A stretch of 64,000 nucleotides of DNA from the NCBI GenBank assembly GCA_004764695.1, contig SMSO01000037.1, positions 2,332,747 through 2,396,746 of the forward strand, in the 5' to 3' direction. Origin of the DNA: Schizochytrium sp. TIO01 (taxonomy: Eukaryota > Protista > Bigyra: Labyrinthulomycetes). Both the position numbers and the translations under genes were made by a program. Under the pieces are notes generated by a model. The model was not told the origin of the DNA, ran no database searches, and saw nothing but the letters and a program-made list of their open reading frames with translations. Each line of letters starts with the position of its first letter. The first letter of the stretch is position 1. Shown piece after piece: positions 8,896 through 11,964 of this stretch.

Positions 8896-11800
8896 TGTCG
8901 CGAGGACTGTTGCTCGGTTTCTATATGCAGGTCTTATATTAGGTGGGAACACGGGTAAGCGTTTCCCACAGTAGAGGGAAAAGGGAAAGAAAAACAGAAG
9001 AGATGGGAATCGAACTCAAGCCGTAAGAAACCTTTTAATATTTTAACCAAAAGGTAGTCTTAGCACTAAGCCGAATATTGCTGCTTCGCTGTACCTTATA
9101 TAGATAATAGCTCCCAACAATACACCCCTTACGGACGTGAGAAACGATTTGTTCTTTCTGTGAAAGTTGAAGTTTATTAGTACGTATCACTGGAGCTATG
9201 ACTGTGAATGTCCAGCTGGCGGACACCCCTGACTGTGAGGGGGGTACGACTAAGCTTTTCACTACTCTACCCCAGAGTGCAAGCACTTTGGGCCCATAAC
9301 CTGTCGCGAGGACTGTTGCTCGGTTTCTATATGCAGGTCTTATATTAGGTGGGAACACGGGTAAGCGTTTCCCACAGTAGAGGGAAAAGGGAAAGAAAAA
9401 CAGAAGAGATGGGAATCGAACTCAAGCCGTAAGAAACCTTTTAATATTTTAACCAAAAGGTGGTCTTAGCACTAAGCCGAATATTGCTGCTTCGCTGTAC
9501 CTTATATAGATAATAGCTCCCAACAATACACCCCTTACGGACGTGAGAAACGATTTGTTCTTTCTGTGAAAGTTGAAGTTTATTAGTACGTATCACTGGA
9601 GCTATGACTGTGAATGTCCAGCTGGCGGACACCCCTGACTGTGAGGGGGGTACGACTAAGCTTTTCACTACTCTACCCCAGAGTGCAAGCACTTTGGGCC
9701 CATAACCTGTCGCGAGGACTGTTGCTCGGTTTCTATATGCAGGTCTTATATTAGGTGGGAACACGGGTAAGCGTTTCCCACAGTAGAGGGAAAAGGGAAA
9801 GAAAAACAGAAGAGATGGGAATCGAACTCAAGCCGTAAGAAACCTTTTAATATTTTAACCAAAAGGTGGTCTTAGCACTAAGCCGAATATTGCTGCTTCG
9901 CTGTACCTTATATAGATAATAGCTCCCAACAATACACCCCTTACGGACGTGAGAAACGATTTGTTCTTTCTGTGAAAGTTGAAGTTTATTAGTACGTATC
10001 ACTGGAGCTATGACTGTGAATGTCCAGCTGGCGGACACCCCTGACTGTGAGGGGGGTACGACTAAGCTTTTCACTACTCTACCCCAGAGTGCAAGCACTT
10101 TGGGCCCATAACCTGTCGCGAGGACTGTTGCTCGGTTTCTATATGCAGGTCTTATATTAGGTGGGAACACGGGTAAGCGTTTCCCACAGTAGAGGGAAAA
10201 GGGAAAGAAAAACAGAAGAGATGGGAATCGAACTCAAGCCGTAAGAAACCTTTTAATATTTTAACCAAAAGGTGGTCTTAGCACTAAGCCGAATATTGCT
10301 GCTTCGCTGTACCTTATATAGATAATAGCTCCCAACAATACACCCCTTACGGACGTGAGAAACGATTTGTTCTTTCTGTGAAAGTTGAAGTTTATTAGTA
10401 CGTATCACTGGAGCTATGACTGTGAATGTCCAGCTGGCGGACACCCCTGACTGTGAGGGGGGTACGACTAAGCTTTTCACTACTCTACCCCAGAGTGCAA
10501 GCACTTTGGGCCCATAACCTGTCGCGAGGACTGTTGCTCGGTTTCTATATGCAGGTCTTATATTAGGTGGGAACACGGGTAAGCGTTTCCCACAGTAGAG
10601 GGAAAAGGGAAAGAAAAACAGAAGAGATGGGAATCGAACTCAAGCCGTAAGAAACCTTTTAATATTTTAACCAAAAGGTGGTCTTAGCACTAAGCCGAAT
10701 ATTGCTGCTTCGCTGTACCTTATATAGATAATAGCTCCCAACAATACACCCCTTACGGACGTGAGAAACGATTTGTTCTTTCTGTGAAAGTTGAAGTTTA
10801 TTAGTACGTATCACTGGAGCTATGACTGTGAATGTCCAGCTGGCGGACACCCCTGACTGTGAGGGGGGTACGACTAAGCTTTTCACTACTCTACCCCAGA
10901 GTGCAAGCACTTTGGGCCCATAACCTGTCGCGAGGACTGTTGCTCGGTTTCTATATGCAGGTCTTATATTAGGTGGGAACACGGGTAAGCGTTTCCCACA
11001 GTAGAGGGAAAAGGGAAAGAAAAACAGAAGAGATGGGAATCGAACTCAAGCCGTAAGAAACCTTTTAATATTTTAACCAAAAGGTGGTCTTAGCACTAAG
11101 CCGAATATTGCTGCTTCGCTGTACCTTATATAGATAATAGCTCCCAACAATACACCCCTTACGGACGTGAGAAACGATTTGTTCTTTCTGTGAAAGTTGA
11201 AGTTTATTAGTACGTATCACTGGAGCTATGACTGTGAATGTCCAGCTGGCGGACACCCCTGACTGTGAGGGGGGTACGACTAAGCTTTTCACTACTCTAC
11301 CCCAGAGTGCAAGCACTTTGGGCCCATAACCTGTCGCGAGGACTGTTGCTCGGTTTCTATATGCAGGTCTTATATTAGGTGGGAACACGGGTAAGCGTTT
11401 CCCACAGTAGAGGGAAAAGGGAAAGAAAAACAGAAGAGATGGGAATCGAACTCAAGCCGTAAGAAACCTTTTAATATTTTAACCAAAAGGTGGTCTTAGC
11501 ACTAAGCCGAATATTGCTGCTTCGCTGTACCTTATATAGATAATAGCTCCCAACAATACACCCCTTACGGACGTGAGAAACGATTTGTTCTTTCTGTGAA
11601 AGTTGAAGTTTATTAGTACGTATCACTGGAGCTATGACTGTGAATGTCCAGCTGGCGGACACCCCTGACTGTGAGGGGGGTACGACTAAGCTTTTCACTA
11701 CTCTACCCCAGAGTGCAAGCACTTTGGGCCCATAACCTGTCGCGAGGACTGTTGCTCGGTTTCTATATGCAGGTCTTATATTAGGTGGGAACACGGGTAA

Positions 11801-11964
11801 GCGTTTCCCACAGTAGAGGGAAAAGGGAAAGAAAAACAGAAGAGATGGGAATCGAACTCAAGCCGTAAGAAACCTTTTAATATTTTAACCAAAAGGTGGT
11901 CTTAGCACTAAGCCGAATATTGCTGCTTCGCTGTACCTTATATAGATAATAGCTCCCAACAATA
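8896..11964 (-). mobile_element. Tandem-array non-autonomous Copia-type LTR retrotransposon (TRIM): 8 LTRs of 227 bp + 7 internal segments of 179 bp (406-bp period)
   Basis: Unit starts at 8896, 9302, 9708, 10114, 10520, 10926, 11332, 11738. The array begins and ends with the same 227-bp segment. On the minus strand the LTR (TATTG...GACA) is followed directly by GGTTATGGGCCCA (PBS) and preceded by AAGGGGTG (PPT). AAAGA is duplicated at 8891-8895 and 11965-11969. Confidence 0.88.
9289..9301 (-). promoter_or_regulatory. Primer-binding site complementary to the anticodon arm of initiator tRNA-Met (half-tRNA priming); repeated every 406 bp
   Basis: Plus strand TGGGCCCATAACC matches the anticodon-arm segment of eukaryotic tRNA-iMet ending at about position 39. 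It abuts the LTR-terminal CA on the minus strand, as in Drosophila copia. Confidence 0.85.

Follow-up and report, generated by a model that had tools for sequence, protein, structure and literature searches.

In plants, terminal-repeat retrotransposons in miniature, or TRIMs, such as the tandem-array TRIMs (TA-TRIMs), Wukong and Cassandra form arrays in which long terminal repeats (LTRs) and internal regions alternate as LTR-internal-LTR-internal-LTR, with LTRs shared between neighbouring units (PMC4717578, PMC4528315, PMC7215508); solo LTRs and multimers occur within one family, and unequal crossing-over has been proposed for them. More generally, tandem TRIMs are usually explained by recombination between LTRs, with integration of tandem cDNA as an accepted alternative (PMC11899658). 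The Helenus elements of fungi are likewise non-autonomous miniature LTR elements; together with their Copia partners they use the anticodon loop of spliced initiator methionine tRNA (tRNA-iMet) and make target-site duplications (TSDs) of 5 bp, the tRNA genes bear introns so that only the mature tRNA fits, and the resident Copia families have the same primer-binding site (PBS) although the Helenus LTRs are unrelated to those of the partner (Kojima 2024, PMC10886601). Drosophila copia, which primes with a "half-tRNA" (PMC5371799), and yeast Ty5 are autonomous elements of 5-6 kb with 5-bp TSDs, and their PBS also pairs with the anticodon arm of tRNA-iMet rather than with its 3' end (PMC5371799, PMC10886601). 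Here we describe a 406-bp tandem repeat in a 64,000-nucleotide stretch of the Schizochytrium sp. TIO01 genome (G000:C36:2332747-2396746; hereafter, the window). This repeat array very probably goes back to a single insertion of a non-autonomous LTR retrotransposon 635 bp long, a TRIM, for which we propose a life cycle followed by amplification in place.

The array has the shared-LTR arrangement of the plant elements, and its family also contains both solo LTRs and multimers; Cassandra, however, carries 5S sequence, whereas the family described here is small (15 sites) and strictly subtelomeric. As in Helenus, 5-bp TSDs are made, only a mature tRNA transcribed from intron-bearing genes fits the PBS, and the LTRs are unrelated to those of the resident Copia families that have the same PBS. 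Helenus is defined by an LTR that contains a tRNA-like sequence with A and B boxes, whereas the LTR of the present element has only a B-box-like GAGTTCGATTCC and no match to the tRNA model, and the host here is a stramenopile and not a fungus. The B-box-like motif lies at LTR positions ~101-118 (window 9410-9428, minus strand), with no A box alongside. A search of 8800-9800 with Rfam at E values up to 10 returned no family, ARAGORN called no tRNA there, and a tRNA-derived LTR was rejected; a similarity over 47 nt between the LTR and DNA downstream of a tRNA-iMet gene (E = 0.004) is regarded as chance. The priming resembles that of copia and Ty5, but the element encodes nothing and its targeting is only putative. 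Tandem-array TRIMs and TRIMs primed by the tRNA-iMet anticodon loop are therefore already known kinds, from plants and from fungal Helenus, respectively. The first-pass annotation of the window, made from its letters, had suspected that this retrotransposon might be undescribed, and a literature check indeed found no such element in thraustochytrids or other stramenopiles; before this, no TRIM and no Copia system with half-tRNA-iMet priming appears to have been documented in a thraustochytrid.

Positions 1-2923 of the window belong to a 28S gene, of which they are the 3' part. Next come tandem repeats with units of 412 bp and then of 371 bp, after these the 406-bp array, and finally the 371-bp repeat again and 50 TTAGG units. 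Beyond a run of Ns (14924-15090) lies a mirror image with CCTAA units, 371-bp and 412-bp repeats and a complete ribosomal DNA (rDNA) unit on the minus strand; the 412-bp repeat occupies 3928-5170 and 21456-23513. TTAGG telomeres, terminal rDNA and spacer repeats, there of 366-529 bp, have likewise been described in Aurantiochytrium limacinum MYA-1381 (bioRxiv 10.1101/2023.06.15.545109). Because the N run sits between the TTAGG and the CCTAA tracts, the two "arms" of the window represent a head-to-head join of two chromosome ends and not one palindromic molecule. N-bridged telomere-to-telomere joins are also found at C24 ~4.008 Mb, C30 ~8.354 Mb and C13 ~4.040 and ~5.693 Mb. Since contigs are chromosomes joined across N runs, seemingly "internal" positions can be subtelomeric.

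Tandem Repeats Finder assigns the array (8896-11964) a period of 406, 7.6 copies and 99% matches, and BLAST of its two parts resolves the 3069 bp (7x406+227) into eight LTRs of 227 bp and seven 179-bp internal regions, every one of them in minus-strand orientation. Read on that strand, each LTR begins with TATTGTTGGG and finishes with CCTCGCGACA, GGTTATGGGCCCAAAGTGC abuts the LTR end without a spacer, and GTAAGGGGTG immediately precedes each LTR. The array contains a single variant, at 9056, where the outermost LTR has a private A in place of the G of the other seven LTRs; all seven internal regions are identical. The flanking AAAGA duplication is resolved at the mirror position on the neighbouring chromosome end, where the uninterrupted empty site AGCTTGAGAAAAGAAGCTCCAAGTT is matched exactly; this site and the array site both lie ~2.7 kb from their own telomere tracts. 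The reconstructed empty site aligns over its full length to the mirror region, and its sequence is also matched, with three mismatches at most, by 19 other satellite units in the window (0 expected by chance). These results bear out several readings of the first-pass annotation: the layout with an LTR at both ends, the LTR junction sequences and a TATA-like motif ~20 bp into the LTR, units identical but for one variant at 9056, and an AAAGA duplication with an empty counterpart near 18044. That counterpart had been placed on the "right arm" of the window; the mirror site stands, whereas the arms belong to two chromosome ends. An X15 contig that skips 3074 (3069+5) bases was considered as a presence/absence polymorphism and rejected, because exact empty paralogues exist in the same genome. 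The coordinates are collected in Table 1.

Table 1. Features of the tandem array and its target site (window coordinates)
Feature	Position	Strand	Remarks
Target-site duplication, copy 1	8891..8895	+	AAAGA (TCTTT in element orientation); identical to 11965-11969; the empty site has a single AAAGA
Tandem-array TRIM (very probable)	8896..11964	-	8 LTRs and 7 internal regions; adjacent units share one LTR
3'-terminal LTR (element orientation)	8896..9122	-	227 bp, TATTG...GACA; A at 9056
TATA-like CTATATAAGG	9094..9103 (first LTR)	-	LTR positions 20-29; in every LTR; putative promoter
Short polypurine-like tract AAGGGGTG	9123..9130	-	Immediately upstream of the next LTR
Internal region	9123..9301	-	179 bp; sole long open frame lacks Met
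PBS GGTTATGGGCCCAA	9288..9301	-	Abuts LTR end; complements spliced tRNA-iMet positions 27-40; present in every unit
LTRs 2-5	9302-9528, 9708-9934, 10114-10340, 10520-10746	-	BLAST
LTRs 6-8	10926-11152, 11332-11558, 11738-11964	-	BLAST
Other six internal regions	9529-9707, 9935-10113, 10341-10519, 10747-10925, 11153-11331, 11559-11737	-	Identical
RNA-contig-covered stretch	11492..11879 (X17), 11547-11881 (X19)	-	LTR through U5, PBS, internal region and polypurine tract into next LTR
Target-site duplication, copy 2	11965..11969	+	AAAGA
Empty site	18033..18057	-	Mirror position, 371-bp satellite of neighbouring chromosome end

Searched against the 64-Mb genome, one 406-bp unit gave 37 matches that resolve into 17 copies, all of the TRIM: the 8-LTR array of the window, two 3-LTR forms (both on C6), eight LTR-internal-LTR copies of 635 bp and six solo LTRs. 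All 17 start at the first base of the LTR and stop at its last base, and 16 have perfect 5-bp direct repeats in their flanks. Two pairs, the C6 copies and C13:5696215 with C30:8350989, have the same flanks and TSD within each pair; they are products of exchange between chromosome ends and not separate insertions. This leaves 15 distinct sites, 14 of which have a perfect 5-bp TSD, each different. The exception, C12:140616, lies within a Copia LTR that lacks 21 bp present in the intact LTR of L054. The first-pass annotation had looked to single LTR-internal-LTR copies and solo LTRs with differing 5-bp TSDs as the signature of a tandem-array miniature retrotransposon, and to arrays that begin and end at arbitrary phases of the 406-bp unit without duplicated flanks as a sign to the contrary; the former are present, none of the latter was found genome-wide, and the LTR-exact ends, the TSDs, the PBS and the lack of coding capacity support its identification.

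LTRs are 100% identical inside every multi-LTR copy, and LTRs of different copies are separated by 0-4 changes in 228 positions. Four or five changes are private to the window array, among them the 1-bp deletion to which its 227-bp LTR is due. These private changes, together with the identity of LTRs within copies, mark the window array as a diverged lineage that was amplified recently. The family as a whole is young and probably active. A solo LTR of the TRIM at C12:90334 stands within a few bases of the target position of the window array.

TRIMs have terminal direct repeats of ~100-250 bp, a short internal domain and a total length below ~1 kb. In this family, LTRs of 227/228 bp enclose an internal region of 179/180 bp, and the single element is 635 bp long; GGTTATGGGCCCAA abuts one LTR and AAGGGGTG the next, independent insertions have TSDs, and in the tandem array the LTRs are shared, an LTR stands at both ends and one TSD pair surrounds the whole. 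The longest open frame (128 codons) lacks Met and matches nothing in Pfam, and there is no gag/pol coding capacity. The element fits the TRIM definition except in the termini of its LTRs.

The PBS, GGTTATGGGCCCAA, which we take to match the Drosophila copia PBS sequence itself, is complementary to 14 nt of the anticodon arm of the host tRNA-iMet (positions 27-40) in its spliced form only. Read exon by exon, the complement TTGGGCCCATAACC is made up of the last 11 nt of exon 1 and the first 3 nt of exon 2; exon 1 ends with TTGGGCCCATA, exon 2 begins with ACCCAA, and an intron of 30-31 nt follows position 37. The 3' end of the match falls inside the anticodon arm. The gene at L081:1474-1575 scores 49.8 bits with the Rfam tRNA model (clustered genes, 49.7-49.8 bits) and has A1:U72, a GGG/CCC anticodon stem with three G:C pairs, and a T-loop ATCGAAA with A54 and A60, all of which are hallmarks of eukaryotic initiator tRNA-Met. 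At least four such intron-bearing genes are clustered, at L081:485-587, 1248-1350 and 1474-1575 (G000:C6:317394-318484) and at C6:320166. The expectation that a host tRNA-iMet must fit the PBS is thus borne out by the spliced tRNA, which supplies TTGGGCCCATAACC.

These genes were found by a pattern permitting an intron. ARAGORN misses all tRNA-iMet genes of the C6 cluster, whose introns are 30-31 nt long; the unspliced motif GGGCYCATAACCC has one genome hit, which is not a tRNA and was rejected as the gene; no genomic tRNA gene contains GGGC(C/T)CATAACCC; the pattern CATAAC...GATCGAAAC has zero genome matches; and an Rfam tRNA search in which 63 of 2948 candidates were scored did not reveal the gene. 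At three PBS-bearing loci, which are transposon copies, ARAGORN found no tRNA. Because the contiguous sequence is absent from tRNA genes, where the intron splits it, the match needs tRNA splicing, and this splicing dependence is clean sequence evidence that the predicted primer is the mature tRNA.

The PBS 13-mer has 48 occurrences in the genome, whereas the reversed control has 0. Each of the 30 that were read stands immediately after an LTR end, and seven more are those of the window array; of the remaining 11, eight lie 2-5 kb from a match to the reverse transcriptase domain RVT_2 (PF07727), two are in mapped TRIM copies (C33, C34) and one is unexplained. This last, C33:2650306-2650318, alone lies both outside the TRIM copies and more than 5 kb from any RVT_2 match. 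That the 371-bp and 412-bp satellites might be tRNA-primed elements was rejected, as neither is complementary over 11 nt or more to the tRNAs of the window.

RVT_2 has 53 matches in the genome, and the 14-nt tRNA-iMet PBS stands directly after the LTRs of at least five Copia lineages, namely Copia-A and at least four with unrelated LTR ends. Copia-A (~124 bits with RVT_2) is ~5.46 kb long, with LTRs of ~197 bp (TATTGAAG...TGCAATA), the PBS GGTTATGGGCCCAAGATAC and GCGGGGGAG before the 3' LTR (|TATTG). Its open frames are up to 1700 aa long, and the genes are in the Copia order, with an integrase SH3-like domain upstream of RVT_2. The TSDs of Copia-A are 5 bp long, and in several copies the two LTRs are 100% identical; among the lineages with this PBS, these two properties are shown for Copia-A alone. 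Its LTRs carry a telomere-like (CCTAA)4-5 tract ~30 bp from the 5' end (L038:1333-1352, L070:2967-2986 and 14 other loci). The second lineage of interest, Copia-B (~69 bits), has an LTR of 469 bp (TGTTGTCT...CAACAAAA) that starts with TGTTG, the PBS GGTTATTGGCCTA (family form GGTTATTGGCC) and the tract TTTGGGGAGGTG before the LTR (|TGTTG), and it is located in the same satellites as the TRIM. Copia-B also includes a 1671-aa subfamily. An internally deleted Copia-B copy at L054:1032-3013 (G000:C23:2250-4231) has a normal 469-bp LTR and a perfect tRNA-iMet-type PBS, GGTTATGGGCCCAAAGTAC, instead of GGTTATTGGCC; RVT_2 lies only ~700 bp downstream, and behind the PBS comes sequence that matches internal parts of full-length copies.

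All TRIM insertions are subtelomeric. Eleven of the 15 sites lie in the 371-bp satellite, two in the 412-bp satellite and one in a Copia-B LTR, one is not placed in a satellite, and all are near contig ends or internal head-to-head junctions. Within the satellites the insertions are scattered over unit positions and occur in both orientations; this spread excludes a single 27-bp insertion hot spot for the TRIM. The distribution is paralleled by Ty5, which integrates at telomeric heterochromatin and whose integrase recognises subtelomeric chromatin through Sir4.

Two RNA libraries contain the element. An oligo-dT RNA-seq contig (X17, 388 nt) covers the stretch between LTR position 86 and, in the next LTR, position 67, and a metatranscriptome contig (X19, 340 nt) that between about LTR position 86 and, in the next LTR, position 12. 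The flanking satellite yielded no contig in either X17 or X19, though in a DNA run its depth is 5-30x that of the TRIM, which argues against DNA carry-over.

We propose the following life cycle. A transcript driven by the LTR (R-U5-PBS-internal-PPT-U3-R, where PPT is the polypurine tract) would be packaged by proteins that an autonomous Ty1/copia element resident in the genome supplies. The primer for the minus strand would be a 5' fragment of spliced tRNA-iMet whose last 14 nt, positions 27-40, end in the anticodon arm and pair with the PBS. A Copia integrase would then insert the cDNA with a 5-bp duplication. In the present case, integration took place at an AAAGA within a 371-bp satellite unit ~2.7 kb from the telomere, where the locus now reads LTR-(internal-LTR)x7. 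After insertion, copy number would grow by unequal homologous recombination between LTRs, and the same process would yield solo LTRs and 3-LTR forms. Either targeting or selective retention would confine the family to subtelomeric satellites, and it has also been copied, without transposition, by exchange between chromosome ends.

Several observations weigh against this account. The LTRs have TA...CA termini (TATTG...GACA) in place of TG...CA, and the PPT is only ~8 nt long and includes one pyrimidine; TA starts are, however, usual in this genome, as the resident Copia-A LTRs, with TA...TA termini (TATTG...CAATA), also begin with TA. Strand, start and end cannot be read from the RNA contigs, which have ~2.7x depth and whose 5' limits may be mere effects of branching in the assembly graph. 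The 7.6 copies of the array rest on the assembly, and its single TSD pair is equally compatible with the integration of multimeric cDNA. As regards the helper, the TRIM LTR and internal region show no BLAST similarity to any Copia locus examined, alignments of TRIM and Copia junctions are non-significant (p ~0.1), none of the 31 loci of Copia lineages with the tRNA-iMet PBS has satellite within 1.5 kb, and the subtelomeric placement of the TRIM resembles that of Copia-B, whose PBS differs.

The first-pass annotation had predicted an autonomous Copia partner. Such elements do exist, and Copia-A has the same PBS, the TATTG start, the 5-bp TSD and identical LTRs; its detectable common features with the TRIM are the PBS and the first five LTR bases, and nothing else. 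Since nothing significant is common beyond the PBS and the distributions are mismatched, no single partner can be named from these comparisons. The PBS therefore points to a Copia-A-like helper, and the landing sites to a Copia-B-like integrase or to selection. It is possible, though we would put it forward only tentatively, that the helper is the subtelomere-restricted Copia-B or an unseen relative and not one of the lineages with the tRNA-iMet PBS; the integrase would then set the landing site while the PBS of the TRIM picks the primer. In favour of this are, besides the location of all 15 TRIM sites and the absence of satellite at the 31 Copia loci, the Copia-B copies that lie in the same satellites, often no more than a few kb from TRIM copies. 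One of them, a solo LTR with the TSD AAAAG (L032:3632-4100; G000:C13:4044156-4044624), stands one base from the target position of the window array. The LTR starts are also similar (TATTGT in the TRIM, TGTTGT in Copia-B), and a ...GGGG..GTG tract precedes both LTRs. However, the PBS GGTTATTGGCCTA differs from that of the TRIM at 2 of 13 positions and looks like an anticodon-loop site for another tRNA (compare the use of tRNA-Ile-AAT, PMC10886601), the junction similarity is non-significant, and selection against insertions elsewhere could yield the same distribution.

A second alternative concerns the origin of the tandem arrangement. A multimer may have formed before integration, through a read-through transcript, a template switch between LTRs or recombination of cDNA or circles, and been integrated once with little or no growth afterwards. 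One TSD pair brackets the entire array, seven of the eight LTRs and all seven internal regions are identical, and tandem TRIMs as products of retrotransposition are allowed for in the literature (PMC11899658). Yet six solo LTRs, the reciprocal product of LTR-LTR exchange, are present while the other multimers are small; a 3.07-kb cDNA would be about five times the unit length; and the one variant stands in the outermost LTR, as expected if exchange homogenises the inner units. None of these points is decisive, but the series from solo LTR to 8-LTR array, with one TSD pair each, and the outermost position of the variant lead us to favour growth in place by unequal LTR exchange as the probable course, and to regard tandem cDNA integration as unlikely.

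Growth by LTR exchange may be joined with the question of the helper. We speculate, while considering it rather improbable, that the integrase targets chromosome ends, that LTR exchange makes satellite arrays out of the insertions and that a Copia-B-like helper uses a primer tRNA other than that of the TRIM. If so, retrotransposition together with unequal recombination would be a continuing source of repeats of the LORE-TEARS type, which are thought to maintain these unusual chromosome ends. The mismatch between site and primer offers a testable case, either of integrase-directed targeting or of a helper and a passenger with different primers.

That the array is an ordinary subtelomeric satellite of the LORE-TEARS kind merely resembling an LTR element is next to impossible: although it sits among other 370-410-bp tandem repeats of the rDNA-telomere spacer and its unit length equals that of the published Group 1, this is refuted by dispersed copies that end exactly at LTR ends with different 5-bp TSDs and by a unit search that hits TRIM copies only, and it is further opposed by a PBS common to Copia elements, by the lack of similarity to the 412-bp or 371-bp repeats and by a within-array identity above 99.9%, compared with 75-86% in the true satellites.

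LORE-TEARS Group 1 of A. limacinum has a unit of ~406 bp in the spacer between 28S and TTAGG and is thus alike in length and neighbourhood; it lies directly downstream of 28S in ~4 units, and the words "LTR" and "retrotransposon" are absent from the preprint (bioRxiv 10.1101/2023.06.15.545109). The first-pass annotation had linked the unit to a repeat of ~406 bp described in Aurantiochytrium subtelomeres, but the published repeat corresponds to the 28S-adjacent 412-bp repeat, which shares no sequence with the TRIM. Because the position of Group 1 is held here by this unrelated repeat, the agreement in length is a coincidence, and in annotation the 406-bp unit should not be grouped with LORE-TEARS repeats. 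Our reading of the array as a TRIM re-labels one tandem repeat of a chromosome end as a mobile element, young and probably active, rather than a structural satellite, and it presents a case of a satellite array born from a transposon.

Two minor observations were made in the course of these searches. A search match at C31:5938032-5938238 has 71% identity to the TRIM LTR and lacks an RVT_2 hit in its vicinity, and it may represent a second, older miniature family. In the window, a 121-nt hit of the tRNA model at 32787-32907 on the minus strand (43.7 bits), not called by ARAGORN, is probably an intron-bearing tRNA gene next to those for tRNA-Gln, -Leu and -Lys.

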